DNA of 64,000 nucleotides from contig NIVC01000557.1 of the NCBI GenBank assembly GCA_002269645.1, forward strand, positions 208,109-272,108. The letters are read 5' to 3'. This document shows positions 12,054 to 52,908 of the stretch, one piece after another. The first letter of the stretch is position 1. Each line of letters starts with the position of its first letter. This stretch comes from Macrostomum lignano. Taxonomy: Eukaryota. A program made the position numbers and the translations under genes. Below the pieces are notes generated by a model. It was not told the DNA's origin. It saw only the letters and a list, made by a program, of their open reading frames with translations, and did no database searches.

Positions 12054-12064
12054 GTGAGTCTTGA

Positions 12065-21455: not shown

Positions 21456-21759
21456 CATACATGCGCAACTTCCAAAATTCGGTCGGCCATGCGACTTAGT
21501 TTTAACAAAAAATGCGACGCAGTTTTTGGCCAAAAATGCGACTTACGTAATAAAAACTGTAAAGCAAAATTAACGCAACTTTGGGTAAACGGCAGAAGTA
21601 ACTATAACTGTCTTATTAGGGCAAAATGGCTCGTAATGGCTCTAATGGCTTAGTAATACTACTTAGGTTTTTTTGGGTGGGCATTTTTGCGACTTCCTTG
21701 ATTGGCTGCCAAATCGGTCGGCCGGATCGGCCGACTCGGCCGACTGTTGCGCATGTATG
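21456..21759. mobile_element. hAT-type MITE (duplicate of 8464-8767)
   Basis: Same TIRs and GTCGTAAT TSD. Confidence 0.9.
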
Positions 21760-24758: not shown

Positions 24759-26631
24759 ATGAAGGCACAACAACAACAACAACAGCAACCTCCCAATGCG
24801 CAACTTCAGGCATCTGTTTCGCCTAGAATAAAAATTGTGCTGGGCGAAAAGCCCTCTGTCACGCACTGTAACCCATTCTACCTCATGAGCAAGGAGCCGC
24901 CACAGGAGGCGCCATTGACTGGAGCTTCCAATTTGATCAAGCATCACGATCTTGAGCAGGCTTATTCTATGTACTGTACCAGGCGTTTGCGTGAGGAGCT
25001 GTCGTGTTTTCTGCCTGGGTTACCTGGGCAGATTGATACTAATGGGTGAGTCTTGAGTCAGGCTGATTGCTAACAGGTCAGGCTGATTGCTAATAGGTCA
25101 GGCTGATTGCTAACAGATCAGGCTGATTGCTAATAGGTCAGGCTGATTGCTAACAGGTCAGGCTGATTGCTAACAGGTCAGGCTGATTGCTAATAGGTCA
25201 GGCTGATTGCTAACAGATCAGGCTGATTGCTAATAGGTCAGGCTGATTGCTAACAGGTCAGGCTGATTGCTAATAGGTCAGGCTGATTGCTAACAGGTCA
25301 GGCTGATTGCTAACAGGTCAGGCTGATTGCTAATAGGTCAGGCTGATTGCTAACAGGTCAGGCTGATTGCTAATAGGTCAGGCTGATTGCTAACAGGTTA
25401 GGCTGATTGCTAATAGGTCAGGCTGATTATTAATGGGCCAGACTGATTATTGGGTCAGACTGATTATTAATGGGTCAGACTGATGATTAGTGGGTCAGAC
25501 TGATTATTAATGGGCCAGACTGATTATTGGGTCAGACTGATTATTGGGTCAGACTGATGATTAGTGGGTCAGACTGATGATTAGTGGGCCAGACTGATTA
25601 TTGGGTCAGACTGATTATTAATGGGTCAGACTGATGATTAGTGGGTCAGACTGATTATTAATGGGCCAGACTGATAATTAGTGGATCAGACTGATTATTA
25701 ATGGGCCAGACTGATTATTGGGTCAGACTGATTATTAATGGGCCAGACTGATGATTAGTGGGTCAGACTGATTATTAATGGGCCAGACTGATAATTAATG
25801 GGTCAAACTAATTATTAATGGGTCCAACTGGTTGCTAATGCATGTGTCTAATGACTTATGGGTGTTGGACTGTCAACTCAATATATTATATTTGCATTAA
25901 AATCTCTCTTCAGATTCGAAGACGGCTCATCCCTGTCCGAGATGATCGAGCGACCGCCAGTTACTGGCAAAGATTTGGCCCCACTATCGGCCAATGCCAT
26001 GTCCGCTTTTCGTCTACACGAGGGTCCCGTGCCGCCTGAGCTGGCTCAGTTGTTTAACAAGCCGCCGCCCCAGCAGCAGCAACAGCAGCAGCCGCAGCCA
26101 CCTACTCCCCAATCGTCTCAGCAGTCTCAGCAGCCTCCAGGTCGAACTAGGAAGCGTCGTCACGAAGCCGTCATCACAGATTTGATTGGCAGCAGTCATA
26201 ACGAATCTAATCCAGGCGATAATACCAGTGCCAGCTCTAATACTATTGTTGCTTCTCAATCAACTTCTGCTTCTAGTAGCGTTGGCGTGACCAGTGCTCA
26301 GCCAGTTTCTGCTCCTAGCGCTGCTGCTCACGTGAGCGTCGCTTCTGGCGCTCCGGCTATCAGCAGGTTTGCCGCCGGCGTTCCACCGCTGCCGCCTCCG
26401 CAGCCTTTGCCATCGGCCAGCTCTGCCGCCGCTTCTGTTGCTGCTGCTGCTTCCGCTGCTTCGGCGTCTTCAGCCATGCCGACAGCAGCATTTTCCTCGT
26501 CACCAGCGGCCGCTGGACAGTGCTTGAACTCTGCTTCCGCCGCCGCCGCCGCTAAATTTGATAAAGCCGAACGGAAAGCCGAAAGGAAACGAAAAAAGGA
26601 GAAGAAACGAAAGACAAAAGAGAGGACTTGA
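24759..26631 (+). CDS. MED19: Mediator subunit 19; exons 24759-25045 and 25914-26631
   Basis: PFYLM...LTGASNLIKHHDLEQAY...LSCFLPGLPGQID joined to GSSLSEMIERPP...MSAFRLHEGPVP is the Med19 domain, with a Lys-rich C-tail. GT/AG sites give a phase-2 join (GG|A). AATAAA lies at 26665. The start ATG is inferred. Confidence 0.93.
25057..25830. repeat. MED19 intron minisatellite (complete copy)
   Basis: As 12065-12753 but continuing toward the intron 3' end. Confidence 0.95.
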
Positions 26632-33600: not shown

Positions 33601-34173
33601 CCATCTCCCTCTCTCCATCTCCCTCTCTCCAACTCCATCTCTCTCCATCTCCTCTCTCCAACTCCATCTCTCTCCCTCTCTCTCTCCATCTCCCTCTCTC
33701 CATCTGCCTCTCTCCATCTCCCTCTCTCCAACTCCATCTCTCTCCATCTCCTCTCTCCAACTCCCTCTCTCTCTCCATCTCCCTCTCTCCATCTCCCTCT
33801 CTCCACCTCTCTCTCTCCATCCCTCTGTCTCCATCTCTCTCTCCGTCTCTCTCTCCATATCCCTCTCTCTCTAAGTCCCTCTCTCCATCTTCAACACCGC
33901 CGCTGTTCTAATATCGTTGGTATCATATTTTGTCACCCACGAAACAAAACCAAACAGGAGGCGATCGTATTCGTAGTTGGCGGCGGCAACTATATTGAAT
34001 ATCAGAATCTGGTTGATTTGCGTCGAACTTCAAAATCATCCGGCGTTACGGGCGCCGGCGGAGGCGGCGGCGGCAGCGGCGGCGGTGGCAGGCGGATCAC
34101 CTACGGCAGCACCCAGCTGGTGACCGGGTGTCAGTTTCTGCTACAGCTGGCTGAATTGGGTCAGCTCACCTGA
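27630..34173 (+). CDS. SCFD1: Sec1-family protein Sly1/SCFD1, ~692 aa; exons 27630-27803, 28645-28908, 30798-31235, 32136-33122, 33958-34173
   Basis: Motifs WK|VLIYDRSGQD, FQRPLLLLLDRSLDLAT, LDMHTNVAT, YRYFDPK and EAIVFVVGGGNYIEYQNL match Sly1/SCFD1. All four introns are GT-AG, phase 0. AATAAA lies at 34227. Confidence 0.96.
27950..28555. repeat. 28-bp minisatellite (ATTGAGAATCGCTTCTCGAGACTCTCAC)n, SCFD1 intron 1
   Basis: Head-to-tail units with an internal GAGAA-tcgc-TTCTC hairpin and no spacers. Confidence 0.95.
28940..30360. repeat. ~21-22-bp purine-rich minisatellite (AGGGGATACAGGAAAGGGATCT)n, SCFD1 intron 2
   Basis: Variable tandem units. Confidence 0.92.
30361..30720. repeat. ~43-bp dimeric higher-order repeat, SCFD1 intron 2
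   Basis: AGGATCCAATGAATTCGTGAAA plus AGGATCTATTGAATACGGAAG, repeated about 8 times. Confidence 0.9.
31260..32030. repeat. 24-25-bp minisatellite (GTAGTCAGTAGTTATCAACTTCCG)n, SCFD1 intron 3
   Basis: Same family as 26983-27530. Confidence 0.93.
33290..33890. repeat. CT-rich (polypyrimidine) low-complexity repeat, SCFD1 intron 4
   Basis: CTCCATCTCCCTCTCT-type units; the overlapping ORFs are artefacts. Confidence 0.93.
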
Positions 34174-35121
34174 GCTTATTATTGGCTAATTATTGTTCTT
34201 ATAGTTTCTGACAAGTCAATGACAATAATAAAATCAACTGTTGGATCTAAATATAATTCACAAGCTCCTGATTTGCTAGCAGATTTTTATTTGATGCGAT
34301 TATAAGTTCTATGTAAAAATTATATTAAAATGAAATGATAATACAGTTTATTTCAAAATTTTATTTCACTTCTTTGTCTGGTTAATAAGGTGGATTGTGT
34401 CATCTGTCTCGTTGTTTTTTCTCGTTTTTTTCATATTATTGCATGCTCCAACTATGCTACTTATGTCTTAGTTCGGAGAGATAGTAGTAAGTGATGCTTT
34501 TCCGCATTCGGACTAGGTGGGGAAATATTAAGTTATTTGTAATTGCTTTCAATTTTGTGACTCATTTCGTTTGTAGTACTTTATGTCTGTGTCTGTCCCT
34601 CATATCCATGTGTGTTATTTATTTGTGCATATAACAGCAAATCCTTTAATCGTCCCGTGTGTTTTCATTTCTGACAAATAATTGCTTAATTGCTGCTGCT
34701 ATGCTGACTACAGTATACTCGTGGGTCAGCAATTTCGTCTTGTTTATTTTGCAGCTAATGATAATAAGAGTATATTCATACGTATTGTAAGAGAAATTTC
34801 ATAAAAAGTACATAAGTGAAATTCGGTGCACGGGTAGCTACAAAAAACAAGTTTAAAAAATATTTTTGCCTTTATTCATTAAAATGAACCTCAATGCATT
34901 CAGATGCAAATTGAATGCTTAAATATTTTGTCTCCATACCAAAATATCTTTATAATTAAACGGAATCTTCTGACAATACGTGTTTAAAAATCTTTGAACG
35001 TCATTCAAACTTGGATGACAAAGTGACGAAGTCTCTATCGCTCCGCATTGCAGCTCAAGGCAGAGACGGGCTTCGAGCATCGGCATCTCAGCACGGATTG
35101 TAGCCCCACAGTTTCTCAGAG

Positions 35122-36396
35122 ATGCGCCGGGGCTCTGTCGCCTGCCCGTTTTGTCCCAGGCGGTTCTGCCGCACCCGACCGGCAGCGGCGCAATACTTGC
35201 GTCATGTGCGGTCACACGGAATTGGCTACGACTCGGAGCCTGAGGAGACGGCTGCGACCAACTCAGAAGCTGGCAGAGCGGCGGCGGTCGAGCAGGTCGC
35301 GTCTCGCAATGAGTCAGCGATGAAGCCGTGTACAGATGGCAGTCGTGCAGTGACAAATCGTGCTCAGGGTCTCCAGAAGCCGTTCCAGTGCGACACTTGT
35401 CAAAAGAAGTTCTCCAGGAGAAGCTATCTCAATGCTCACATTAGTGTGGTGCACAGGAAGGCAACACCGCACAAATGCAAGCGGTGTGAAAAGTCCTTCT
35501 CAGCGAAACCCGATCTGCACTTGCACAGCCGGTCTCACACTGGTGAGAGACCGTTTGAGTGCAAGGTGTGCGGCAAGAGATTCAGTGACAGCAGCAGCCT
35601 TACTACACACTCCAGGCAGCACACAGGAGAAAAGCCATTTGAGTGCAAAGTGTGTGGCAAGAGATTCAGTGACAGCAGCAGCCTTACTACACACTCCAGG
35701 CTGCACACGGGAGAAAAGTCATTTGAGTGCAAAGTGTGCGGCAAGAGATTCAGTGTCAGCAGCAGCCTTACTACACACTCCAGGCTGCATACAGGAGAAA
35801 AGCCATTTGAGTGCAAAGTGTGCGGCAAGAGATTCAGTGTCAGCAGCAGCCTTACTACACACTCCAGGCAGCACACAGGAGAAAAGCCGTTTGAGTGCAA
35901 AGTGTGCGGCAAGAGATTCAGTGTCAGCAGCCATCTCACTAGGCACTCAAGGCTGCACACAGGAGAAAAGCCATTTGAGTGCAAAGTGTGCGGCAAGAGA
36001 TTCAGTGTCAGCAGCAGCCTTACTACACACTCCAGGCTGCACACAGGAGAAAAGCCGTTTGAGTGCAAAGTATGCGGCAAGAGATTCAGTGACAGCAGCA
36101 ATCTCACAACGCACTCAAGGCTGCACACAGGAGAAAAGCCATTTGAGTGCAAAGTGTGCGGCAAGAGATTCAGTGACAGCAGCCATCTTACTGGGCACTT
36201 AAGGCAGCACACAGGAGAAAAGCCATTTGAGTGCAAAGTGTGCAGCAAGAGATTCAGTGTCAGCAGCCATCTCACTAGGCACTCAAGGCTGCACACAGGA
36301 GAAAAGCCATTTGAGTGCAAAGTGTGCGGCAAGAGATTCAGTGACAGCAGCCATCTTACCAGGCACTCAAGGCTCCACACAAGAAAAGCCATTTGA
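35122..36396 (+). CDS. Tandem C2H2 zinc-finger protein, paralogue 1 (atypical N-terminal finger, 2 unique fingers, 10 homogenised fingers)
   Basis: Canonical CxxC-x12-HxxxH fingers with TGEKP linkers; a single 424-aa ORF with an in-frame stop upstream of the ATG; ends in TRKAI* through a 2-bp deletion. Confidence 0.88.
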
Positions 36397-36634
36397 GTGC
36401 AAAGTGTGCGGCAAGAAATTCAATCAAGTCAACAATCTTAAGTGGCACTCCGACTGCACTTTCTGTAGCGAATATTCACCCTTGCGGCGCTCCGTCATTG
36501 CTGACGTGCACAATCGGTCTTGGTCGTTAGTGTGCTCGGAATCCTTTAGCAGCTTTTTTGTTGTTTTATTCATGATCTTTGAACTTTATTGAATTCTCTT
36601 AAAGTGATGCATTCGGAAGCTAATCCAATATCCA

Positions 36635-36822
36635 ATTAGTGACAGAACTTAATGGCCAGTTAGTGACAGCACTTAATGACCAGTTAGTTACAGCACTCAA
36701 TGACTAGTTTGTGACAGCACTTAATGACCAGTTAGTTACAGCACTCAATGACTAGTTTGTGACAGCACTTAATGACCAGTTATAGACAGCACTCAATGAC
36801 TAGTTAGTGGCAGCACTCAATG
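36635..36822. repeat. 24-bp VNTR (GTGACAGCACTCAATGACCAGTTA)n after ZF paralogue 1
   Basis: Tandem units, interrupted by a foreign segment at ~36823. Confidence 0.92.
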
Positions 36823-37629
36823 CAGAACACGGGATCTATTTTTCTCTAGCACTGCAGTCGGCAGAACTCCATTAAAGTCCCTTTGTTCGCAGTCAACAGC
36901 AGATACTTTTAGGTTGCCACGCTCAACGCTAAAACTAGGCGATTGAAGTGGGACATCGCTTGATCGTGACTCGTTTAACGATTGGATTAGGCTTTTTGCT
37001 TCGGTAGAGATGACGCGTGAGGCATTCTCCACATCCAAAATGGCGCTCACTTCATCACTTGTTAGCTTCCGGGGTTGATTGTCGCTGCTCACTTCAGCAG
37101 AAGATCGTTTACTAGAGCATCCAACAGGCCGTTTTCGAGCGCCTTGCTGAATCCAATTCCAGGCACAGGCAAGTGTACCGATTGAACATTCGCCCACGGC
37201 CACGGAGTTGGCATACAAAGTCGATTTCTTCGCGCTGCAACCCAGAAATCTCTCGTCCTTCTATACAGGAGTAGTCTATCATTTTCTCAGAACGTTCGGG
37301 TCAGGAGTCAATTGAATAAATTTTAATAAAAAGTTAGACCAATTAATACTTTGTCAGTCGCTCTTTTAGGCTCGGAACTACAAGCTAAAATGAAATACAG
37401 TTTGCATTTTGTACCATAGACAAATTCCATTTTCTTGCGGGCCGAGAATCAGGACTTGCACTGAACTTAGACTGAAGCGAATGCAGTTTGACTTGACTTG
37501 CGGGCCGAAGAATGTCGTTTCTCGGCCCGCCCGCAAAATCAAGAAGGAATACAAATCCAGCAGGCCAGCTTCGCGGCCCTCGGATTCTCCTCCTTTCTGC
37601 CCTAGAAAGCCTGAAAGATTTATACATTC

Positions 37630-37866
37630 TAGTGCAAAATGTGTGGCAAGAGATTCAATCAAATCAGCAATCTTAAAAAGCACTCCGAGCAGCACTTTCT
37701 GTCGCGAATATTCACCTTTGCGGCGCTCCGTCATTGCCGACGTGAGCAATCTGTCTTGGTCCTTATTGTGCGCCAAGTGTTTGCTCGCAATCCCTTAGCA
37801 GCTTTTTGTCGTTTTATTCATGATCTTCGGACTTTGTTGAATTCTCTTAAAGTGATGCATTCGTAA
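37630..37866 (+). pseudogene. 5'-truncated, diverged relic of the ZF gene 3' end
   Basis: CGKRFNQISNLKKHSEQH and the downstream tail are homologous to the ends of the four ZF genes; followed by the 24-bp VNTR. Confidence 0.85.
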
Positions 37867-37884
37867 GCTAATCCAATAACCATA

Positions 37885-38357
37885 TAGTGACAGCACCTAA
37901 TGACCAGTTAGTGACAGCACTTACTAAGTGCAAAGTAACAGCATTTAGTGACAGCACTCGACCAGTTAGTGACAGCACTCAATTACTAGTTAGTGACAGC
38001 ACTTGATGACCAGTTAGTGAAAGCACTTAATGACCAGTTAGTGACAGCACTTAATGACCAGTTAGTGAGAGCACTTGATGACCAGTTAGTGACAGCACTT
38101 AATGTCCAGTTAGTGACAGCACTTGATGACCAGTTAGTGACAGCACTTAATGTCCAGTTAGTGAGAGCACTTGATGACCAGTTAGTGACAGCACTCAATG
38201 ACCAGTTAGTGACAGCAATTAATGACCAGTTAGTGACAGCACTCAATGACCAGTTAGTGACAGCACTCAATGACCAGTTAGTGACAGCACTCAATGACCA
38301 GTTAGTGACAGCACTCAATGACCAGTTAGTGACACTGACAGCAATCAATGACCAGTA
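37885..38357. repeat. 24-bp VNTR after the ZF relic
   Basis: Same unit as 36635-36822. Confidence 0.93.
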
Positions 38358-39194
38358 GGCACTGCATATACTATACTGCACTGTAATGCTAGACCAGCTT
38401 TTTACTTTGTTTTCCTGCCAAAGGTATCCAATTGTTTTCCAATCATTTCATTACTTACTGTAGAATTACTTAGCACTTAAACTTTTTCTTTGACTCCCTA
38501 ACTTGCGTTTCAATTTTGTGCAATCAAGCGTTATTATCGAACCTTTTCTCCCCTGTATTTATAAATTACACCGGTGGCATTCAAATTTTACTTGTTTTCT
38601 TTACTAATTGGTTTGTTTAAATGTTTGCCAGGATATTTTAATTGCTTTTTAATGACTTAATAGGCAACGTAAACTCATCCATGTGTGTTATTTATTTGTG
38701 CATATAACAGCAAATCGTTGAATCGCCCCGTGTGTTTTCATTTCTGACAAATGATTGCTTAATTGCTGCTGCTATGCTGACTACAGTATACTCGTGGGTC
38801 AGCAATTTCGTCTTGTTAATTTTGCAGCAAATGATAATAAGAGTATATTCATATGTATTGTAGGAGAAATTTCATAAAAAGTACATAAGTGAAATTCGGT
38901 GCACGGGTAGCAACAAAAAAACCAGTTTAAAAATATTTTGCCTTTATTCTTTCAATATGAACCTCAATGCATTCAGATGCAAATTGAATGCTTAAATATT
39001 TTGTCTCCATACTAAAATATCTTTATCATTAAACTGAATCTTCTGACAATACGTGTTTAAAAATCTTTGAACGTCATTCAAACTTGGATGACAAAGTGAC
39101 GAAGTCTCTATCGCTCCGCATTGCAGCTCAAGGCAGAGACGGGCTTCGAGCATCGGCATCTCAGCACGGATTGTAGCCCCACAGTTTCTCAGAG

Positions 39195-40499
39195 ATGCGC
39201 CGGGGCTCTGTCGCCTGCCCGTTTTGTCCCAGGCGGTTCTGCCGCACCCGACCGGCAGCGGCGCAATACTTGCGTCATGTGCGGTCACACGGAATTGGCT
39301 ACGACTCGGAGCCTGAGGAGACGGCTGCGACCAACTCAGAAGCTGGCAGAGCGGCGGCGGTCGAGCAGGTCGCGTCTCGCAATGAGTCAGCGATGAAGCC
39401 GTGTACAGATGGCAGTCGTGCAGTGACAAATCGTGCTCAGGGTCTCCAGAAGCCGTTCCAGTGCGACACTTGTCAAAAGAAGTTCTCCAGGAGAAGCTAT
39501 CTCAATGCTCACATTAGTGTGGTGCACAGGAAGGCAACACCGCACAAATGCAAGCGGTGTGGGAAGTCCTTCTCAGCGAAACCTGATCTGCACGTGCACA
39601 GCCGGTCTCACACTGGTGAGAGACCGTTTGAGTGCAAGGTGTGCGGCAAGAGATTCAGTGACAGCAGCAGCCTTACTACACACTCCAGGCTGCACATAGG
39701 AGAAAAGCCATTTGAGTGCAAAGTGTGCGGCAAGAGATTCAGTGTCAGCAGCCATCTTACTACACACTCCAGGCAGCACACAGGAGAAAAGCCATTTGAG
39801 TGCAAAGTGTGCGGCAAGAGATTCAGTGTCAGCAGCAGCCTTACTACACACTCCAGGCAGCACACAGGAGAAAAGCCGTTTGAGTGCAAAGTATGCGGCA
39901 AGAGATTCAGTGACAGCAGCAATCTCACAACGCACTCAAGGCTGCACACAGGAGAAAAGCCATTTGAGTGCAAAGTGTGCGGCAAGAGATTCAGTGTCAG
40001 CAGCAGCCTTACTACACACTCCAGGCAGCACACAGGAGAAAAGCCATTTGAGTGCAAGGTGTGCGGCAAGAGATTCAGTGTCAACAGCTGTCTCACTAGG
40101 CACTTAAGGCTGCATACAGGAGAAAAGCCATTTGAGTGCAAGGTGTGCGGCAAGAGATTCAGTGACAGCAGCTGTCTCACTAAACACTTAAGGCTGCATA
40201 CAGGAGAAAAGCCATTTGAGTGCAAAGTGTGCAGCAAGAGATTCAGTGTCAGCAGCCATCTCACTAGGCACTCAAGGCTGCACACAGGAGAAAAGCCATT
40301 TGAGTGCAAAGTGTGCGGCAAGAGATTCAATCAAGTCAGCAATCTTAAGTGGCACTCCGACTGCACTTTCTGTAGCGAATATTCACCCTTGCGGCGCTCC
40401 GTCATTGCCGACGTGCACAATCGATCTTGGTCTTTAGTGTGCTCGGAATCCTTTAGCAGCTTTTTAGTTGTTTTATTCATGATCTTTAGACTTTGTTGA
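39195..40499 (+). CDS. Tandem C2H2 zinc-finger protein, paralogue 2 (8 homogenised fingers plus a frameshifted tail)
   Basis: 434-aa ORF with the same N-terminus as paralogue 1. Confidence 0.88.
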
Positions 40500-40544
40500 A
40501 TTCTCTTAAAGTGATGCATTCGGAAGCTAATCCAATATCCAATT

Positions 40545-41000
40545 AGTGACAGAACCTAATGGCCAGTTAGTGACAGCACTTAATGACCAGTTAATGACAA
40601 CACTCAATGACCAGTTAGTGACAGCACTCAATGACCAGTTAGTGACAGCACTCAATGACCAGTTAGGACAGCAATCAATGTCCAGTTAGTGACAGCACTC
40701 AATGACCAGTTAGTGACAGCACTCAATGACTAGTTTGTGACAGCACTCAATGAGCAGTTAGTGACAGCACTCAATGACCAGTTAGTGACAGCACTCAATG
40801 ACCAGTTAGTGACAGCACTCAATGAGCAGTTAGTGACAGCACTCAATGACCAGTTAGTGACAGCACTCAATGACCAGTTAGTGACAGCACTCAATGACCA
40901 GTTAGTGACAGCACTGAATGACCAGTTAGTGACAGCACTCAATGACCAGTTAGGACAGCAATCAATGTCCAATTCGTGACAGCACTCAATGACCAGTTAG
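40545..41000. repeat. 24-bp VNTR after ZF paralogue 2
   Basis: Same unit. Confidence 0.93.
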
Positions 41001-41406
41001 TGGCATTCAAATTTTACTTGTTTTCTTTTTAATTGGTTTGTTTAAATGTTTGCCAGGATATTTTAATTGCTTTTTTAATGACTTAATAGGCAACGTAAAC
41101 TCATCCATGTGTGTTATTTATTTGTGCATATAACAGCAAATCCTTTAATCGTCCCGTGTGTTTTCATTTCTGACAAATAATTGCTTAATTGCTGCTGCTA
41201 TGCTGACTACAGTATACTCGTGGGTCAGCAATTTCGTCTTGTTTATTTTGCAGCAAATGATAATACGAATATATTCATATGTATTGTAGGAGAAATTTCG
41301 CATGCTAATGTCTTAAAAAAGTAAATTGGTGAAATTCGGTGCATGGGTAGAAAAAAATTGAAAAAAAATTTTGCCTTTGTTTTTTCAATATGAACCTCAA
41401 TGTATT

Positions 41407-41812
41407 TGTAGCGTAAAGCGTATTCGCATTTAGAAAGTACATGTACGCTAGATTTATTTTTAGAATTAGAAAATCTTCCAGAAAATATGTTTTTAGTGCG
41501 AAGTTAAAGTTCATTTTAGAAATTTCCTTAAATTTAATTAAATGTTAATTTTACTATAAAATCCTAAATATAGAAGTTGTAATAATCGAATTTATTAATG
41601 CATTTTTACTGTAGAATTACGCATGAGTATTGAACGCAATTAACTTTGTTTTAATTAATGAAATTTCCAGAATTTTCCGGTTATATACAATACATCACTA
41701 TATAAAAAACTTAGACCAAATACTCAACTCGTTAAGTTTTCTTTTTCTTCTGAAAAGCTCAGAACCATCGCCTTTGCTCTCTCTATCTTTTGTTGACATC
41801 AACGTAGTTACA
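41407..41812 (+). repeat. 5' LTR (406 bp)
   Basis: TGTAGCGTAAAG...ACGTAGTTACA; both ends are repeated at 46057-46676. Confidence 0.95.
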
Positions 41813-41814
41813 AT

Positions 41815-41830
41815 TGGTCCGGTGAGGCGA
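41815..41830 (+). promoter_or_regulatory. Putative primer-binding site (TGGTCCGGTGAGGCGA); cognate tRNA not identified
   Basis: TGG begins after a 2-nt spacer behind the 5' LTR. Confidence 0.6.
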
Positions 41831-41838
41831 CACCAAAG

Positions 41839-42644
41839 ATGTCCAACGAAGACTCAATTCAACCCGAAGCCGACGCACTCCAGGGTCAGGACGCCGCGAA
41901 CGACGACGCTGCGCCAACTGGTCACCCAGCAGTGGCAGCTGTGGCTGTCAAGCCACCACCCTTCTATTGGACAAATCCAGAAACGTGGTTCTGCACTGGA
42001 GGCGCCGTTTAACTTAGCGCACATCACCTCTGAGAAAACTAAGTTTTTTCATCTGGTCGCTCATTTACCCAAGGACATCGGCTCGGTCTTCCTGTCCAGA
42101 GATTCGCTATCGTCAGCTAATGCGCAGAGCTACACCAACCTGAAGAAAGGCGTCTGCAACATGCTGCAGAAGAGCCAACAAGAAAAAATCAATGAAATCC
42201 TGGCAACCTCAGACCTGTCGGGTCGCACTGTCGGGCTTCCAAGGCCAATCCCCTACGGAGATCGCCACCATCGCCGACGCGATGTTCAGCTTCAGCGTCC
42301 AGAGTAACGACGGGAAGATCAACGCAATAGGGCAGCTCGGAGCAGCGCAGCCTGTCGCTGCCATCCCAGCTCAGCACACCCAAGGCTCATCTGCGACGCG
42401 GAGACCACCTCGCAACGACATGCCGCCGTTCCGACCTGGTCAACGTCCAGTCGTCTGCCGCGTGCATGTCTTCTACGGCCTGCAGGCGCGCACATGCCGC
42501 CGGTGGTGTCAGTTTCCGAAGTTTCCGGGACACCAGCCACGCGTCCTTAGCAACCGCGAGTCAACGCCCGCCCAGTCTTGCTCTAACTCGCCTGTGCGTC
42601 GCGGTCCGGAAAACTGGGCGGCGCTGCCCAACACGCCGCAGTAA
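41839..42644 (+). pseudogene. gag: Gypsy gag, frameshifted near 41995 and apparently internally deleted near 42225
   Basis: KPPPFYWTNPETWF in one frame continues as LEAPFNLAHITSEKTKFFHLV in another. A C-terminal CRVHVFYGLQARTCRRWCQF Cys/His motif is present, and the direct repeat CTGTCGGG flanks the apparent deletion. Confidence 0.82.
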
Positions 42645-45600
42645 GCAGCGCCATCAGCGATAGAGTGGCGAACCAAGCCTTCCTGGTGGTAGATCTGACC
42701 TTCAACAGCCAAGTCCTTGCCTTCCTCGTCGACACTGGTGCCGCAGCATCCATCATCCCATCGAAGTATCTACACCAGGCCCTCCAAGCGACCGGATTCC
42801 GCTTAACCACAGGTGCTCCAATCCCGGTTGCTGGAGAAGTTACGCTCGATGTCGCCATTCGAGGCCTGCACCGCTCGTTCCGCTGGACCTTCTTGATCGT
42901 CGCCGTGGTTCAGCCCATACTGGGCTATGACTTCCTATCGCACTATGGGTTGCTAGTCGACTGCAAGACGCGCCAACTGGTCGATCCTGAAACAAAGCTG
43001 CGCACGCAGACACTGCCGGTTGCCGCGATGCAGCTCGACACCTTCAGCGTTTCCTTGGCGTACCCACACAACTGCGATCAGCGGATCCGTCAGCTCATCG
43101 ATCGCTTCACAGACACCTTCACATACGTGGAGGGAAGTCGCCTGCCACCAACCGAAGAGGTGAAGCACGACACGCGTCACGTCATCGTTACCGGCGAGCA
43201 TCGACCGACTCACGCCAAGGCCAGGCAGCTACGCCCCGAGAAACTAGCCATTGCGAAGAATGAGTTCCAGCAGCTGATTGATGCCGGATACCTGCGACCT
43301 TCGTCCAGCAGCTGGGCATCACCGCTGCACATGGTGCCAAAGAAGGACGACGGTGTTCCGAATGGCAAGTGGAGACCCTGCGGGGATTATCGGCAGCTCA
43401 ACAGGTTGACCAAGCCCGACAAGTATCCGATTCCTCACATCCAGTGCTTCACGAGGAGCCTGCACGGGGCGAAAGTCTTTTCGAAACTCGACCTGGTGAG
43501 AGCGTACCATCAGATCCCGATCGCCGAAGAAGATATTCACAAGACCGCCATAGTCACGCCATTCGGGTTGTACAAGTGGACCCGCATGCCATTCGGCCTG
43601 AGGAACGCTGCGCAAACCTTTCAGCGGTTCATCGACGGTGTGCTCCGCGGACTCCCTTTCGCCATCTCCTATATCGACGACCTGCTGGTGGCATCTGCGA
43701 GCGAAGAGGAGCACCTGCAACACCTGGAAGCTGTCCTGTCACGATTGGATCACTACGGACTCAAAGTGCAGCTGGCCAAATGCGTTTTCATGCAACCGGA
43801 AGTCACGTTCCTAGGGCATCACGTCTCAGCCAACGGTATCCGCCCGCTTGCCTCCAAGGTAGACGCCATTCAACAGTGGCCGGCGCCCAAGGACGCGAAC
43901 GTTTTACGGCGATTCCTCGGGGTCATCGGCTTTTATCGGCGTTTCATTCCGCACTTTGCTGACATCGCCGCGCCACTGCAAGACCTCGTTGCATCGGCAC
44001 GACGTTCACCGCGAGCCTACACCTGGGGACAAGTCCAAGAAGAGGCATTCAGGCGACTCAAGGAGAGCCTGGCTGAGCGACTGCTGCTTTAGCACCCGGA
44101 CCCGAACTGCGAGTCCTACAGCTTGGTGACAGACGCTTCATCCACCAGCATCGGCGCTGCGCTTCATCAAGCGTCAAGCGAGACCGCGACACCGATTGGC
44201 CTATTCAGCAAGAAGTTGACGGCTGCGCAGCAGAAATACTTCGCGTTCGATCGAGAGCTTCTCGCCGTATATCTCGCGGTGCTGCACTTCCGGAGCTTGA
44301 TTGAGGGACGCAACGTGACGGTCTTCACGGACCACAAGCCCTTAGTTCAAGCGTTTCACAGCAGCAGAGACAGCACATCGGACAGGGACCAGCGATACCT
44401 CAGCGTCATCACGGAGTACGTCACGGACGTCAGCTACATCCGAGGCGCCGACAACGTCGTCGCAGACGCTCTCTCTAGACTCGACGCCGACAACAGGGCG
44501 AGCATCGGGCATGTCGACGCCGGCCAGCCACCACCAGCGCCGATCGATATCCCAGCCATCGCAGACCAGCAGCAACTGGAAGACATGCAACCATCCGACA
44601 ACTGCCGCGTCTTCCCGGTGGACGGCAACAGGTCACTGCTCTGCGAGACGTCGGCAAGCTACCCGCGACCGGTGATTCCAAAGGCGATGCAACAGTCGCT
44701 GATCAGACACTTCCATGACTTGGGTCACTTCGGCCTCCGCAAGACAGCCCGCCTCATCACATCGCGCTACTACTGGCCCAACATGCGCTTCGATATCAAG
44801 AGCTACTGCCGAGCCTGTGAGACTTGTCAACGCACCAAGATCAGCCGGCACACCATCTCCGGCAGCACATCGTTTGACCTGCCTTCTAACCGACTGGAGA
44901 CGGTCCATATCGACATCGTCGGCCCCTTGCCTGTTCCGGAGCGCAAGTACGACATCTCCTGCGGCCTGACCCCAAGGTATCTGCTTACGATGATCGACCG
45001 GGGCACTGGTTGGTTCGAGGCTGCTCCGCTTGAGTCCATCACAGCTTCCAGCGTCGCCGCCGCCTTCCTGGCTACTTGGATTTCCCGATACGGAGTGCCG
45101 CTCTACATCCTTACGGATCGAGGAGCCCAATTCGAGGCGGACCTCTTCAAGTACCTCGCCAGCCGGGTCGGTTTCTTTCGCCTGAGGACAACGGCGTATC
45201 ACCCGCAGGCAAACGGGAAGGTCGAGCGGGCGCACCGGACGCTGAAGAACATCCTGAAGGCTCATGGACCTTCATGGCTGGACAGTCTGCCGCTCGCGTT
45301 GCTCGCCATGCACATCACTCCGGACGAGAACGGCGTCAGCCCGTTTACGCGCCTCACAGGTGAGCATCCCATGATTCCGCGAGTCCTGGCGACAGACGAC
45401 ATTGAACCTCAGACGCTCCAGCTTCGGATGGACAACATCATCGACGATGAACAACGCCCAGGCACGACAGCACCAGCGCGGCAGTACATCCCGGCTGACC
45501 TGTGGAGCGCCGAGAAAGTCTGGCTGAGGGTGGACTGCGTGCGCAAGCCCCTTGAAGCGCCCTATCAAGGCCCCTTCCAAGTCATCCAAAAGACGGCAAA

Positions 45601-45931
45601 GTTTTTCGTCATCGAGACGCGTCCAGGTCACCAGGAAACCGTTTCTATCGACCGTCTGAAGCCGCTTCGAGGACCCCGAAGAGCCAACGGCGCACGGCAA
45701 ACTAAGCAGCACCGACCGGAGAATCTGCCATCGTCGCAACAGCTATCTGACACACCGACATCGGCAGCCGAGTCGAGCTTACCAACGCCGACAGCAGTGG
45801 CATCCGACCTGCCAGCAGCGTCACCGAATCCGGACCCACCCGCTGCGCCCGCCGCGACAGAGCCGGAACGGGTGACCAGGAGCGGTCGCCGCATGAGATT
45901 CACCAAAGACAATAATTTTCATTACTATTGA
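42608..45931 (+). pseudogene. pol: Gypsy pol (protease, RT, RNase H, integrase), -1 relative to gag, with one in-frame TAG at 44090-44092
   Basis: FLVDTGA protease; [11 protein letters not shown] and YIDD in RT; VTDAS/DRELLA/TDHKPL in RNase H; HHCC, HIDIVGP, TDRGAQF and VERAHR integrase core; PYQGPF motif. ORFs 42665-44092 and 44123-45931 share one frame. Confidence 0.95.
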
Positions 45932-46038
45932 CATCGCGCTTTTCCAATTTTTCAATTTTCTTTCATCGCGTTTCAGTTGAACTGTACCGTACCGTTTTCA
46001 TTGCTTCTTGCTTAAGACCTGGGGACTCCGTCTTCCGT

Positions 46039-46052
46039 GGGGGGGGGGGGAA
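46039..46052 (+). promoter_or_regulatory. Polypurine tract
   Basis: A G12-AA run ending 4 nt before the 3' LTR. Confidence 0.85.
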
Positions 46053-46056
46053 CTAT

Positions 46057-46676
46057 TGTAGCGTAAAGCGTATTCGCATTTAGAAAGTACATGTACGCTA
46101 GATTTATTTTTAGAATTAGAATCAGTGGCGTATCATGGATTTTGAAATGGGGGGGATAACTTTTAGGGACAAAATTTTTGACTGATAAAAAAGTTTTTTT
46201 GCATTTTTTGCTTACGAGTACAATATGCGTTTAAAAAGTACCAAAACTGCGTTTATTGGGCTCAAAAAACTTTACTTTGTTAAAATCAGAATAAAGCCGG
46301 CAGACTTATGTACTAAATACGACATTTTAGGAACTAGAGATTCGCCGAGATAATCATTTAAAACATTTTAATAGTAACTACTGGTAAAATAGGCCGATTT
46401 TGGCAATTTTTCTACGTCTATGCTGCTGCATATTGCATTTTTTTCGAAAAAAAACTCATTTTTGTTTCCTATAAATCATAAAAATGAGGGGGGGATATAT
46501 CCCCGTATTCCCCCCCAGCATACGCCCTTGATTAGAATTTTCCGGTTATATACAATACATCACTATAAATAAACTTAGACCAAATACTCAACTCGTTAAG
46601 TTTTCTTTTTCTTCTGAAAAGCTCAGAACCATCGCCTTTGCTCTCTCTATCTTTTGTTGACATCAACGTAGTTACA
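46057..46676 (+). repeat. 3' LTR (lacks 201 bp present in the 5' LTR and carries a 408-bp insertion)
   Basis: Its first ~65 bp and last ~140 bp match the 5' LTR. Confidence 0.93.
46123..46530. mobile_element. hAT-type MITE (family B) nested in the 3' LTR
   Basis: Imperfect TIRs CAGTGGCGTA / TACGCCCTTG; perfect 8-bp TSD ATTAGAAT. Confidence 0.9.
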
Positions 46677-46901
46677 CATTCAGATGCAAATCGAATGCTT
46701 GAATATTTTGTCTCCATACCAAAATATCTTTATCATTAAACTGAATCTTCTGACAATACGTGATTAAAAATCTTTGAACGTCATTCAAACTTGCATGACA
46801 AAGTGACGAAGTCTCTTTCGCTCCGCATTGCAGCTCAAGGCAGAGACGGGCTTCGAGCATCGGCATCTCAGCACGGATTGTAGCCCCACAGTTTCTCAGA
46901 G

Positions 46902-47924
46902 ATGCGCCGGGGCTCTGTCGCCTGCCCGTTTTGTCCCAGGCGGTTCTGCCGCACCCGACCGGCAGCGGCGCAGTACTTGCGTCATGTGCGGTCACACGGA
47001 ATTGGCCGCGACTCGGAGCCTGAGGAGGCGGCTGCGACCAACTCAGAAGCTGGCAGAGCGGCGGCGGTCGAGCAGGTCGCGTCTCGCAATGGGTCAGCGA
47101 TGCAGCCGTGTGCAGATGGCAGTCGTGCAGTGACAAATAGTGCTCAGGGTCTCCAGAAGCCGTTCCAGTGCGACACTTGTCAAAAGAAGTTCTCCAGGAG
47201 AAGCTATCTCAATGCTCACATTAGTGTGGTGCACAGGAAGGCAAAACCGCACAAATGCAAGCGGTGTGGGAAGTCCTTCTCAGCAAAACACGATCTGCAC
47301 GTGCACAGCCGGTCTCACACTGGTGAGAGACCGTTTGAGTGCAAGTTGTGCGGCAAGAGATTCAGTGTCAGCAGCAGCCTTACTACACACTCCAGGCTGC
47401 ACACAGGAGAAAAGCCATTTGAGTGCAAAGTGTGCGGCAAGAGATTCAGTGTCAGCAGCCATCTCACTAAGCACGCAAGGCTGCACACAGGAGAAAAGCC
47501 ATTTGAGTGCAAAGTATGCGGCAAGAGATTCAGTGTCAGCAGCAGCCTTACTACACACTCCAGGCAGCACACAGGAGAAAAGCCATTTGAGTGCAAAGTG
47601 TGCGGCAAGAGATTCAGTTTCAGCAGCAGCCTTACTACACACTCCAGGCAGCATACAGGAGAAAAGCCATTTGAGTGCAAGGTGTGCGGCAAGAGATTCA
47701 GTGACAGCAGCAATCTCACAACGCACTCAAGGCTGCACACAGGAGAAAAGCCATTTGAGTGCAAAGTGTGCGGCAAGAAATTCAGTGTCAGCAGCAGCCT
47801 TACTACACACTCCAGGATGCACACAGGAGAAAAGCCATTTGAGTGCAAAGTGTGCGGCAAGAGATTCAGTGACAGCAGCCATCTTACTAGGCACTCAAGG
47901 CTCCACACAAGAAAAGCCATTTGA
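46902..47924 (+). CDS. Tandem C2H2 zinc-finger protein, paralogue 3 (7 homogenised fingers)
   Basis: 340-aa ORF with the same TRKAI* 2-bp deletion as paralogue 1. Confidence 0.87.
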
Positions 47925-48159
47925 GTGCAAAGTGTGCGGCAAGAAATTCAATCAAGTCAAGAATCTTAAGTGGCACTCCGACTGCACTTTCTGTAGCGAA
48001 TATTCACCCTTGCGGCGCTCCGTCATTGCCGACGTGCACAATCGGTCTTGGTCTTTAGTGTGCTCGCATTCCTTTAGCAGCTGTTTTGTCGTTTTATTCA
48101 TGATCTTCGGACTTTGTTGAATTCTCTTAAGGCATTCGGAAGCTAATCCAATATCCAAT

Positions 48160-48525
48160 TAAGGGCAGCACCTAATGGCCAGTTAGTGACAGCACTTAAT
48201 GACCAGTCAGTGAGAGCACTCAATGACCAGTTAGTGACAGCACTCAATGAGCAGCCAGTGACAGCACTCAATGACCAGTTAGTGACAGCACTCAATGACC
48301 AGTTAGTGACAGCACTCAAAGACCAGCTAGTGACAGCACTCAAAGACCAGTTAGTGACAGCACTCAAAGACCAGTTAGTGACAGCACTCAAAGACCAGCT
48401 AGTGACAGCACTCAATGACCAGTTATTGAGAGCACTCAATGACCAGTTATTGACAGCACTCAACGACCAGTTAGTGACAGCACTTAACGACCAGTTAGTG
48501 ACACTGACAGCAATCAATGACCAGT
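48160..48525. repeat. 24-bp VNTR after ZF paralogue 3
   Basis: Same unit. Confidence 0.93.
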
Positions 48526-49375
48526 AGGCACTGAATACACTATACTGCACTGTACTGCTAGACCAGCTTTTTACTTTGTTTTCCTGCTAAAGGTTTCCAA
48601 TTGTTTCCGAATCATTTCCTTACTTACTGTAGAAGTACTTAGCACTTCAACTTTTTCTTTGACCCCCTAACTTGCGTTTCAATTTTGTGCAATTAAGCGT
48701 TATTATCGAACCTTTTCTCCCCTGTATTTATAAATTACACCGGTGGCATTCAAATTTTACTTGTTTTCTTTACTAATTGGTTTGTTTAAATGTTTGCCAG
48801 GATATTTTAATTGCTTTTTTAATGACTTAATAGGCAACGTAAACCCATCCACCTGTGCTTTTTATTTGTGCATATAACAGCAAATCGTTGAATCGCCCCG
48901 TGTGTTTTCATTTCTGACAAATAATTGCGTAATTGCTGCTGCTATGCTGACTACTACAGTTATATAATCGTGGGTCAGCAATTTCGTCTTGTTAATTTTG
49001 CAGCAAATGATAATAAGAGTATATTCATACGTATTGTAAGAGAAATTTCATAAAAAGTACATAAGTGAAATTCGGTGCACGGGTAGCAACAAAAAACAAG
49101 TTTAAAAAATAGTTATGCCTTTATTCTTTAAATATGAACCTCAATGCGTTCAGATGCAAATTGAATGCTTGAATCTTTTGTCTCCATACTAAAATATCTT
49201 TATCATTAAACGGAATCTAGTTTCTGACAATACGTGTTTAAAAATCTTTGAACGTCATTCAAACTTGCATGACAAAGTGACGAAGTCTCTATCGCTCCGC
49301 ATTGCAGCTCAAGGCAGAGACGGGCTTCGAGCATCGGCATCTCAGCACGGATTGTAGCCCCACAGTTTTTCAGAG

Positions 49376-50533
49376 ATGCGCCGGGGCTCTGTCGCCTGCC
49401 CGTTTTGTCCCAGGCGGTTCTGCCGCACCCGACCAGCAGCGGCGCAGTACTTGCGTCATGTGCGGTCACACGGAATTGGCCGCGACTCGGAGTCTGAGGA
49501 GGCGGCTGCGACCAACTCAGAAGCTGGCAGAGCGGCGGCGGTCGAGCAGGTCGCGTCTCGCAATGGGTCAGCGATGCAGCCGTGTGCAGATGGCAGTCGT
49601 GCAGTGACAAATAGTGCTCAGGGTCTCCAGAAGCCGTTCCAGTGCGACACTTGTCAAAAGAAGTTCTCCTGGAGAAGCTATCTCAATGCTCACATTAGTG
49701 TGGTGCACAGGAAGGCAAAACCGCACAAATGCAAGCGGTGTGGGAAGTCCTTCTCAGCAAAACACGATCTGCACGTGCACAGCCGGTCTCACACTGGTGA
49801 GAGACCGTTTGAGTGCAAGTTGTGCGGCAAGAGATTCAGTGTCAGCAGCAGCCTTACTACACACTCCAGGCTGCATACAGGAGAAAAGCCGTTTGAGTGC
49901 AAAGTGTGCGGCAAGAGATTCAGTGTCAGCAGCAGCCTTACTACACACTCCAGGCTGCACACAGGAGAAAAGCCATTTGAGTGCAAAGTGTGCGGCAAGA
50001 GATTCAGTGTCAGCAGCCATCTCACTAAGCACGCAAGGCTGCACACAGGAGAAAAGCCATTTGAGTGCAAAGTATGCGGCAAGAGATTCAGTGTCAGCAG
50101 CAGCCTTACTACACACTCCAGGCAGCACACAGGAGAAAAGCCATTTGAATGCAAAGTGTGCGGCAAGAGATTCAGTGTCAGCAGCAGCCTTACTACACAC
50201 TCCAGGCTGCATACAGGAGAAAAGCCATTTGAGTGCAAAGTGTGCGGCAAGAGATTCAGTGACAGCAGCCATCTTACTACACACTCGAGGCTGCACACAG
50301 GAGAAAAGCCATTTGAGTGCAAAGTGTGCGGCAAGAGATTCAGTGACAGCAGCCATCTTACTAGGCACTCAGGGCTGCACACAGGAGAAAAGCCATTTGA
50401 GTGCAAAGTGTGCGGCAAGAGATTCAGGGTCAGCAGCCATCTCACTAAGCACTCAAGGCTGCACACAGGAGAAAAGCCATTTGAGTGCAAAGTGTGCGGC
50501 AAGAAATTCAATCAAGTCAAGAATCTTAAGTAG
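49376..50533 (+). CDS. Tandem C2H2 zinc-finger protein, paralogue 4 (8 homogenised fingers)
   Basis: 385-aa ORF ending at TAG where the other copies have TGG. Confidence 0.87.
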
Positions 50534-50719
50534 CACTCCGACTGCACTTTCTGTAGCGAATATTCACCCTTGCGGCGCTCCGTCATTGCCGACGTGCACA
50601 ATCGGTCTTGGTCTTTAGTGTGCTCGCAATCCTTTAGCAGCTGTTTTGTCGTTTTATTCATGATCTTCGGACTTTGTTGAATTCTCTTAAAGCATTCGGA
50701 AGCTAATCCAATATCCAAT

Positions 50720-52437
50720 TAAAGACAGCACCTAATGGCCAGTTAGTGACAGCACTTAATGACCAGTCAGTGAGAGCACTCAATGACCAGTTAGTGACAG
50801 CACTCAATAAGCAGCCAGTGAGAGCACTTAATGACCAGTCAGTGAGAGCACTCAATGACCAGTTAGTGACAGCACTCAATGAGCAGCCAGTGAGAGCACT
50901 CAATGACCAGTTAGTGACAGCACTCAACGACCAGTTAGTGACAGCACTCAATGACCAGTTAGAGACAGCACTCAATGACTAGTTAGTGACAGCACTCAAC
51001 GACCAGTTAGTGACTGCACTCAATGACCAGTTAGTGACAGCACTCAATGACCAGTTAGTGACAGCACTCAATAAGCAGCCAGTGAGAGCACTTAATGACC
51101 AGTCAGTGAGAGCACTCAATGACCAGTTAGTTACAGCACTCAATGAGCAGCCAGTGAGAGCACTCAATGACCAGTTAGTGACAGCACTCAATGACCAGTT
51201 AGTGACAGCACTCAATGACCAGTTAGTGACATCACTCAATGACCAGTTAGTGACAGCACTCAACGACCAGTTAGTGACAGCACTCAATGACCAGTTAGTG
51301 ACAGCACTCAATGAGCAGTTAGTGACAGCACTCAATGACCAGTTAGTGACAGCACTCAATGACCAGTTAGTGACAGCACTCAATGACCAGTTAGTGACAG
51401 CACTCAACGACCAGTTAGTGACAGCACTCAATGACCAGTTAGGAGTTAGGACAGCAATCAATGACCAGTTAGTGACAGCACTCAATGAACAGTTAGTGAC
51501 AGCACTCACTGACCAGTTAGTGACAGCACTCAATGACCAGTTATTGACAGCACTCAATGATTAGTTAGTGACAGCACTCAATGACTAGTTGGTGACAGCA
51601 CTTAATGACCACTTAGTGACAGCACTTAATGACCACTTAGTGACAGCACTTAATGACCACTTAGTGACAGCACTTAATGACCAGTTAGGACAGCAATCAA
51701 TGACCAGTTAGTGACATCACTCAATGACCAGTTAGTGACAGCACTAAATGAATAGTTAGTGAGAGCACCTAATGACTAGTTAGTGACAGCACTCAATGAC
51801 CAGTTAGTGACAGCACTTAATGACTAGTTAGTGACAGCACTCAACGACCAGTTAGTGACATCACTCAATGACCAGTTAGTGACAGCACTCAATGACTAGT
51901 TAGTGACAGCACTCAATGACCAGTTAGTGACAGCACTCAATGACCAGTTAGTGACAGCACTCAATGACCATTTAGTGACAGCCCTCAATGGCCCGTTAGG
52001 ACAGCAATCAATTACCAGTTAGTAACAGCACTCAATGATTACTTAGTGACAGCACTCAATGACCAGTTTGTGACAGCAATCAATGACCAGTTATTGAGAG
52101 CACTCAATGACCAGTTAGTGACAGCACTCAATGATTAGTTAGTGACAGCACTCAATGACCAGTTTGTGACAGCAATCAATGACCAGTTATTGAGAGCACT
52201 CAATGACCAGTTAGTGACAGCACTCAATGACCAGTTAGTGACAGTATTTAATGACAGTTATTGAGAGCACTCAACGACCAGTTAGTGACAGCACTCAAAG
52301 ACTAGTTAGTGACAGCACTCAATGACTAGTTAATGACAGCACTTAATGACTAGTTAATGACAGCACTTAATGACCAGTTAGTGACAGCACTCAACGACCA
52401 GTTAGTGACAGCACTCAACGACCAGCTAGTGACACTA
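50720..52437. repeat. 24-bp VNTR after ZF paralogue 4 (~1.7 kb)
   Basis: Same unit; the longest array in the cluster. Confidence 0.95.
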
Positions 52438-52908
52438 GCTACACTATACTGCACTGTACTGCTAGACCAGCTTTTTACTTTGTGTTCCTGCCTAAGGTTT
52501 CCAATTGTTTCCCAATCATTTTATTGCTTACTGTAAAAGTACTCAGCAGTTAAACTTTTTCTTTGACTCCTTAACTTGCGTTGTAATTTTTTGCAATCAA
52601 GCGTTCTCTCGAAACTTTACTCCCCTGTATTTATAAATTACACTGGTGACATTGCGAACTTTAGTTGTTTTCTTTACTAATTGGTTTGTTTAAATGTTTT
52701 TTGTCTTGTTTTGACACTGCTTTTTTATTGGCTTAATAGGCCACGTAAACTGTTGAATGCAGAGCTCTGTTGTCGTAAGGCATTTGCTCAGGACATGGGC
52801 CTCTGTCATTAAATATTCAGTAAGTTCAGCAAGTTGGTCGAGTTTTTTTCAGCTGCAGCAGTTTTCGAAAAATTCGAAAGCGTGAGAAATTCGAAAAACC
52901 ACTAGGTA

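Follow-up and report, generated by a model that had tools for sequence, protein, structure and literature searches.

We analyzed a cluster of tandem zinc-finger (ZF) genes in a 64,000-nucleotide stretch of the Macrostomum lignano genome (contig NIVC01000557.1, positions 208,109 to 272,108 of the forward strand). This stretch is called the window below, and positions are counted from its first letter. Homology blocks identified by self-BLAST place the whole cluster at 34604..52751, where four gene units (g1 through g4), one gene remnant and one long terminal repeat (LTR) retrotransposon lie on the forward strand, flanked by a Sec1-family and a TTC7-like gene, both of which were recognized by Pfam matches. 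Self-comparison reveals that the repeated unit is composed of a 5' flank of ~520 bp, an open reading frame (ORF), a tail of ~240 bp, a 24-bp minisatellite and a spacer. The idea that a transposable element carries the gene was rejected, since the units stand in tandem, have no terminal repeats and are flanked by conserved single-copy genes.

The first unit begins with the ~520-bp 5' flank that is common to all units (34604..35121, with flanks here and below delimited by self-BLAST). The g1 ORF follows (35122..36396, 424 amino acids) and encodes a knuckle, a linker, two divergent fingers and ten array fingers, with the array forming a coding minisatellite of ten 84-bp units (35554..36393). The boundaries of this and the other three coding minisatellites were determined by Tandem Repeats Finder (TRF) and codon dissection, and those of the 24-bp minisatellites, to which no strand is assigned, by TRF. 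Downstream are a terminal finger that does not share the reading frame of the g1 ORF and has a 1-bp deletion of its own, together with its tail (36394..36592), and a 24-bp minisatellite of eight copies (36632..36822). An unrelated insert of ~0.8 kb (36823..37624, self-BLAST, likewise without strand) separates this minisatellite from the gene remnant (37625..37880, self-BLAST), which retains only a terminal finger and 3' tail and is followed by its own 24-bp minisatellite (37885..38334). A 133-amino-acid ORF on the minus strand of the insert (36817–37218) has no Pfam match. The second unit comprises a 5' flank (38677..39194), the g2 ORF (39195..40499, 434 amino acids) with an array of eight 84-bp units (39627..40298), and a 24-bp minisatellite (40539..41002). 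In the third unit, the 5' flank is severed by the retrotransposon (41407..46676) into a distal part (41103..41406) and a proximal part (46677..46901), which precedes the g3 ORF (46902..47924, 340 amino acids), its array of seven units (47334..47921) and a 24-bp minisatellite (48166..48503). The fourth unit includes a 5' flank (48847..49375), the g4 ORF (49376..50533, 385 amino acids), an array of eight units (49808..50479) and a 24-bp minisatellite of 71 copies (50724..52434). Because their repeat units contain no stops, the arrays and minisatellites are also crossed by long ORFs in other frames (35360–36202, 47140–48120 and 49614–50618) and on the minus strand, none of which is a gene.

All four ORFs share the same order of parts, with an N-terminal knuckle and linker followed by two divergent fingers (FQCDTC... 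and HKCKRC...), the homogenized array and a broken terminal finger. The knuckle is a degenerate C2H2-like motif (CPFC-x16-HVRSH) whose residues 7–32 yield a sub-threshold match to zf-C2H2_4 (E 0.007), and the linker after it is acidic, Ala-rich and ~55 amino acids long. An AlphaFold2 model of the 144-amino-acid N-terminus was unusable (mean predicted local distance difference test score of 43.7). Each ORF matches PF00096 (E 1e-50 to 3e-66) and PF13465 (E 3e-66 to 8e-90), and all 33 array units have the Krueppel-type arrangement of tandem C-x2-C-x12-H-x3-H fingers joined by TGEKP linkers. The Pfam scan of the four ORFs returned C2H2-type families only, with no match to KRAB, SCAN, ZAD, BTB, SET or SSXRD. 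An initial annotation of this locus had likewise seen none of the first five of these domains and had called the genes effector-less. This description is accurate in that no known effector domain is present, but it is not established, as the knuckle, which is the only conserved non-array part of the family, could serve as a partner-binding module. An upstream coding extension or effector exon is ruled out, since an in-frame TAG lies six codons 5' of the ATG in all four copies and other members of the family consist of a single exon.

The arrays themselves are nearly uniform. TRF reports 84-bp arrays of 10.4, 8.4, 7.4 and 8.4 copies with 89–93% matches, 0% indels and scores of 982–1346, and codon dissection agrees with it in yielding the 10, 8, 7 and 8 near-identical fingers (33 in all) that had first been noticed. 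With helix positions numbered such that the first His is +7, position -1 is occupied by D (12 fingers), V (20) or F (1), position +3 by S (16), H (12), N (3) or C (2), and position +6 by T (21), R (7), K (4) or G (1). A recount of the combinations again gave 12 distinct -1/+3/+6 triplets among the 33 fingers. Variation is also seen at +8 (S, L or A) and +10 (L in 23 fingers, Q in 9 and M in 1), and the zinc-binding framework and linker carry few amino-acid changes.

We ranked the 28 codons of the finger unit by amino-acid heterozygosity, and the three highest values belong to +3 (0.62), +6 (0.53) and -1 (0.50), with +10 (0.44) and +8 (0.27) next. All 33 units and the 28 distinct units alone give the same order. 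The chance that three codons named beforehand would top such a list is 1/3276, or ~1/560 when the list is restricted to the ~16 non-structural codons. Thus the earlier statement that variation falls mainly on -1, +3 and +6 is correct for the top three codons, but +10 is almost as diverse as -1. Together, the three contact codons hold 56% of all amino-acid diversity. This share, computed for each array, is the statistic P of Baker et al., and it equals 0.63, 0.53, 0.55 and 0.56 for g1 through g4, whose arrays have a finger-to-finger DNA identity of 0.88–0.92. For 115 other ZNF arrays that we collected, the median P is 0.28 and the highest is 0.56. Complete PRDM9 orthologues, in the rows considered from the published table (PMC5519329), are assigned values of 0.41–0.68 and rank 1st to 11th among 235–344 ZF genes. 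The window arrays therefore fall inside that range, and the initial comparison with the homogenized minisatellite arrays of PRDM9 is accurate in descriptive terms.

Comparison of the units between genes indicates how these arrays have changed. The nearest relative of a unit differs by a mean of 1.42 positions per 72 nucleotides when sought in another gene, but by 3.09 when sought in the same gene, and identical units occupy different array positions in different genes (g1.7 and g2.4, g1.9 and g2.8, g3.2 and g4.3, g3.3 and g4.4). Because units are closer between genes than within a gene, most of the 12 triplets predate the gene duplications. The flanks of g3 and g4 have diverged by only 1.3–1.5%, and yet three unit indels and two unit replacements set their arrays apart. 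Similarly, divergence between g1 and g2 is 1.1% across the 5' flank and N-terminus and 3.9% in the 3' tail, and at least six unit indels separate their arrays. These findings show that unit number and order change much faster than the flanks gain point substitutions, with units at the array edges being steadier than internal ones. The proposal that shuffling creates new specificities is thus supported as regards the speed at which units are rearranged, but not for the origin of most triplets, which were inherited from before the duplications.

Exchange also appears to occur on a finer scale and between genes. All four residue combinations are present for the position pair -1/+3, and likewise for -1/+10, which indicates either exchange of segments smaller than a unit or recurrent mutation. 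The N-terminus and 3' tail group g1 with g2 and g3 with g4, whereas the frameshifted last unit is common to g1 and g3. In addition, g1/g2-type and g3/g4-type residues are mixed in the M. lignano protein A0A1I8HQT3, a mosaic that also includes further contact variants (I at -1 and a V-S-R triplet). Both the shared last unit and this mosaic point to exchange between paralogues.

Searches with the N-terminal region were used to establish how widely the family is distributed. The N-terminal 138 amino acids retrieved two proteins only, both from Macrostomum lignano and 63–69% identical. A HMMER search with the first 87 amino acids against 1.84 billion representatives gave confident matches confined to M. 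lignano proteins. Among these, A0A1I8HQT3 is the best match (94% identical), with four tandem N-termini and an HTRKAI end like that of g1 and g3. The others are P0005, BOX15_Mlig009848g6, BOX15_Mlig019357g1 and two further M. lignano proteins, and the remaining matches are weak and correspond to proteins with BED- or C2H2-like fingers. Over the first ~80 residues, identity to the M. lignano proteins is ~84–94%. The shared architecture consists of the N-terminal knuckle, the acidic and Ala-rich linker and the FQCDTC finger, with an HKCKRC-type finger next in most copies.

Further tandem clusters of this family reside on two other M. lignano contigs, NIVC01001847.1 (L001) and NIVC01000975.1 (L002). 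They resemble the window cluster in the N-terminal region, the divergent FQCDTC first finger, the finger framework and the tandem arrangement. L002 retains the HKCKRC-type second finger, whereas an array-type finger takes its place in the copies of L001, and the 24-bp minisatellite is present in L002 as it is in the window. The clusters differ in that the window copies lack a 21-amino-acid linker block found in the L001 and L002 paralogues, and in that the window arrays are the more homogenized, with a DNA identity of 0.88–0.92 compared with 0.64–0.84 and P values of 0.53–0.63 compared with 0.26–0.34. A third difference concerns the terminal finger, which is broken in the window copies but intact in L002:15384–16292. 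This intact gene displays the architecture of the ancestor: it is a single exon that ends three codons past the last His of its terminal finger (...HSEQHNV*), and the family therefore has no C-terminal effector exon.

Some members of the family are transcribed. BOX15 gene models are segments of transcriptional units that were derived from RNA-seq (Wudarski et al. 2017, PMC5730564), which implies that the paralogues carrying these names are transcribed. BOX15_Mlig009848g4 and g6 belong to one transcriptional unit and both lie within L001, and thus the paralogues are apparently transcribed as a multi-gene precursor. The paralogue gene IDs gave no hit when sought in the literature and in supplementary files.

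From these results, the four window copies are probably recent tandem duplicates within an intronless ZNF family seen only in Macrostomum. The reading that we favor, and consider somewhat better than even, is that a single member of this Krueppel-type poly-ZF family was amplified in tandem not long ago. Its finger array behaves as a coding minisatellite whose 84-bp units are added, lost and replaced as wholes. Unequal exchange and gene conversion, both among units of one gene and between paralogues, may underlie these changes. The products are predicted to be sequence-specific DNA-binding proteins whose specificity would be re-dealt by unit shuffling, with variation at the contact residues being either tolerated or favored. 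Recruitment of partners, if it occurs, might proceed via the conserved N-terminal knuckle or the linker.

Several lines of evidence weigh against this interpretation, the first of which comes from tests of selection. Nei-Gojobori estimates for the contact codons give a nonsynonymous diversity (piN) of 0.31 and a synonymous diversity (piS) of 0.53, and hence a ratio of 0.58. For all non-contact codons the corresponding values are 0.024, 0.17 and 0.14, and outside the helix, in the framework, the ratio falls to 0.08. When the smallest number of mutational events is counted by hand in the codon table, contact codons have 8 nonsynonymous (N) and 3 synonymous (S) events (omega ~0.7), compared with 12N:13S elsewhere (omega ~0.23), and a Fisher test of these counts, calculated by hand, is not significant. 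The excess of nonsynonymous change that the initial annotation had anticipated at the contact codons is therefore present relative to the rest of the unit, but the ratio stays below 1. Synonymous diversity is also raised in the helix, at +4, +5, +6 and +8, suggesting that finger types act as old haplotype blocks within a homogenized framework. Given a contact ratio below 1 and this raised synonymous diversity, positive selection is not demonstrated. The contact-codon data are compatible with diversifying selection and also with relaxed constraint on the residues that set specificity, and in both cases the paucity of framework replacements indicates purifying selection on the framework.

The coding regions outside the arrays are likewise equivocal. 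Between the pairs (g1,g2) and (g3,g4), the ratio of nonsynonymous to synonymous substitution (dN/dS) for the N-terminus is 0.85–1.13, based on 9–13 nonsynonymous and 3–4 synonymous changes; relative to distant paralogues it is 0.40–0.46, with the knuckle at 0.2–0.5 and the linker at ~0.7 to >1. Coding sequence has diverged less than the flanks (variable columns of 4.2% compared with 10.7–13.9%), and this holds at synonymous sites too, which suggests gene conversion rather than selection at the protein level.

The copies are also damaged, which adds to the case against the favored interpretation. In all four, a 1-bp deletion has removed the second His pair of the terminal finger. A common 2-bp deletion in the last linker causes g1 and g3 to end in HTRKAI* (at 36396 and 47924), and a TGG>TAG change inside the terminal finger ends the g4 ORF at 50533. 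Only g2 reads through the broken finger, into an out-of-frame tail of 45 amino acids. The window copies thus depart from the family trait of an intronless ORF that ends in a ..FNQxSxLxxHSEQH finger, in that the finger is present but frameshifted in each of the four. Within the window, only the remnant at 37625–37880 has this finger in frame (NLKKHSEQH), as do paralogues outside the window, and it thereby reveals the ancestral C-terminus. Many copies of the family in L001 and L002 are frameshifted as well, and the retrotransposon has inserted 225 bp upstream of the g3 ATG. Exact-product look-ups of the g2 and g3 ORFs found no annotated product, and a homology search with full-length g2 found no near-identical protein and was dominated by generic ZNFs.

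The linker lesion has a counterpart elsewhere. The paralogue at L001:11252–12550 carries an independent 1-bp frameshift (L001:12416–12590, HTRKS...) at the linker that is hit by the 2-bp deletion of g1 and g3. Either ACAGGAGAAAAG at this site is a hot spot where mutations recur, or the terminal finger's loss has been selected repeatedly.

One alternative is that the four copies are decaying or dead, that their arrays vary by neutral minisatellite instability, and that the concentration of diversity at contact residues was inherited from a functional ancestral array, with neither function nor selection at work today. This explanation draws on the broken terminal finger in all copies and the further truncations in three of the four, on an N-terminal dN/dS of ~1 among the window copies, on unit types that are shared across genes and hence older than the duplications, on frameshifted copies elsewhere in the family, and on the absence of annotated products in the look-ups and search described above. 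Moreover, other reading frames of the arrays are open too, so openness alone is weak evidence of function. However, loss of the terminal finger leaves 7–10 upstream fingers that would be able to work. Neither the 33 × 84 bp of array nor the 4 × 432 bp of N-terminal sequence contains a stop or frameshift, compared with 9–10 indel events in noncoding sequence. More specifically, the 432-bp N-terminal coding region has 0 indels while the noncoding flank and spacer have 9 events in 889 columns, a rate at which ~4.4 would be expected in 432 bp and at which the probability of observing zero is ~0.012. Changes private to single units number ~9N:5.5S by hand count (omega ~0.4), the framework ratio of 0.08 indicates constraint, and paralogues are transcribed. 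On balance we regard a mostly dead cluster as doubtful, though it is the alternative with the most substantial claim.

Another explanation is that copy number and array differences are inflated by the assembly, such that allelic or homeologous copies, stemming from a karyotype that is partly duplicated, were placed one after another. Duplicated blocks at ≥95% identity make up 180 Mb of the published M. lignano assembly, and extra chromosomes are described for this species (PMC5730564). The window itself holds a direct tandem duplication of 12.76 kb (1–12761 and 12991–25751) that is 99.95% identical with 4 gap columns, and the mosaic composition of A0A1I8HQT3 could be viewed in the same light. 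In contrast, the units of the cluster are set apart by different spacers, by the remnant, by the unrelated 0.8-kb insert and by an LTR element with a target-site duplication, and these features identify four structurally distinct loci rather than one sequence repeated. We therefore judge this explanation to be quite unlikely. The 12.76-kb duplicate either arose very recently or is an artefact of assembly. It contains a ZC4H2-like exon (PF10146, 5606–6265 and its copy) and several 16–23-bp minisatellites.

That the cluster encodes a flatworm counterpart of PRDM9, acting as a recombination-hotspot determinant or meiotic targeting factor, is highly improbable: P and the finger DNA identity of 88–92% are inside the PRDM9 range, but there is no SET, KRAB or SSXRD domain, intact family members stop three codons past the last His of the terminal finger, and several paralogues and clusters exist instead of a single copy.

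A stronger version of the favored reading, young tandem amplification of a poly-ZF gene, would hold that the Macrostomum ZNF family, which has no known effector domain, employs finger minisatellites of PRDM9-grade hypermutability in several tandem paralogues as an adaptive sequence-recognition repertoire directed against LTR elements or the abundant satellites of the genome. The knuckle would recruit partners, and Platyhelminthes would have independently invented an arms-race system like that of the KRAB zinc-finger proteins (KZFPs). We consider this version unlikely. If the genes are active, they would offer a tractable invertebrate system in which minisatellite arrays yield DNA specificities without a KRAB or SET partner. 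More than half of the M. lignano genome is repetitive, and transgenesis is established in this species, so tagged proteins could be expressed for mapping of targets. If the copies are instead decaying duplicates, the cluster still illustrates the pace at which a coding minisatellite is restructured relative to point mutation. The locus would gain in interest with evidence that the genes are expressed, that the arrays are polymorphic and that the products bind repeats.

Repeats of other kinds surround the genes. The Ty3/gypsy-type retrotransposon, identified by its PR-RT-RNaseH-INT domains in Pfam, has LTRs at 41407–41812 and 46056–46676 whose termini are TG..CA, and a (T/C)ATT target duplication accompanies it. 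The ends of these LTRs are near-identical (100% over 66 nucleotides and 99% over 109 nucleotides), but their lengths are 406 and 621 bp and an internal block differs. A DUF7041 gag-like ORF is located at 41630–42307 within the element. The 24-bp minisatellite, whose unit is CCAGTTAGTGACAGCACTCAATGA, is found 3' of every window copy, in 8–71 copies, and 3' of one L002 copy (L002:2406–3094). It has one 10-mer, AGTGACAGCA, in common with the part of the finger unit that codes for the helix (shuffle P ~0.01), and this single match makes a weak case for derivation of the minisatellite from the finger unit, which we did not adopt. The idea that an array targets its own 24-bp minisatellite (8 fingers × 3 bp = 24) was rejected with low confidence, as the GGNGGC-like pattern given by the textbook code is unmatched there. 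Across the window, this crude recognition-code pattern matches only in (GCN)n runs. Tandem repeats account for ~30% of the 64 kb by the sum of TRF intervals, mostly as 13–30-bp minisatellites of ~90% identity, and this share is in line with the high simple and tandem repeat content reported for M. lignano. Upstream of the cluster, the Sec1-family exon (PF00995) lies within 32301–34173 and is followed by a CT-rich low-complexity tract (33328–33890). Its closest database match is only 37% identical, even though M. lignano proteomes are included in that database, which reflects a gap in annotation or hints at a sibling species as the source of the window.

Comparison with PRDM9 reveals both likenesses and differences. 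As in PRDM9, the 84-bp units are ~90% identical at the DNA level and are gained, lost and reshuffled, with edge units being steadier than internal ones, and diversity is concentrated at -1, +3 and +6 to a degree (P of 0.53–0.63) that lies within the 0.41–0.68 of complete orthologues in the rows considered from PMC5519329. Unlike PRDM9, the window genes lack KRAB, SSXRD and PR/SET domains (no match to PF00856 or PF21549), are intronless, have a contact-codon piN/piS below 1, and occur as four tandem paralogues with additional clusters elsewhere, whereas PRDM9 is a single gene. For want of SET, KRAB and SSXRD domains, the window genes therefore do not belong to PRDM9.

A second parallel is with expanding families of poly-ZF genes. 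Lineage-specific ZNF expansions include the KRAB-ZFPs of tetrapods, the ZAD-ZNFs of insects and the FiNZ-ZNFs of cyprinid fish (PMC10547256; Emerson & Thomas 2009, PMC2604467), and base-contacting residues are the most variable positions in the KZFP, ZAD and FiNZ expansions (Wells et al. 2023, PMC10547256). Co-evolution of such expansions with transposable elements is documented in all three groups. The window genes resemble these families in the tandem duplication of poly-ZF genes, in a lineage-restricted N-terminal module, in having base-contacting residues as the most variable, and in a host genome rich in LTR elements and repeats. They differ from KRAB-ZFPs and ZAD-ZNFs in that their N-terminal module is a degenerate C2H2-like knuckle with an acidic linker, with no match to KRAB (PF01352), ZAD (PF07776), SCAN or BTB, and so can be assigned to neither family. 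Relative to typical KZFPs, their arrays are far more homogenized, with a total diversity of 2.5–3.2 compared with a median of 9.6. Full-text literature searches found no comparable poly-ZF expansion in flatworms. In their tandem growth and lineage restriction, the window genes are a further case of the known class of lineage-specific, tandemly expanding poly-ZF genes.

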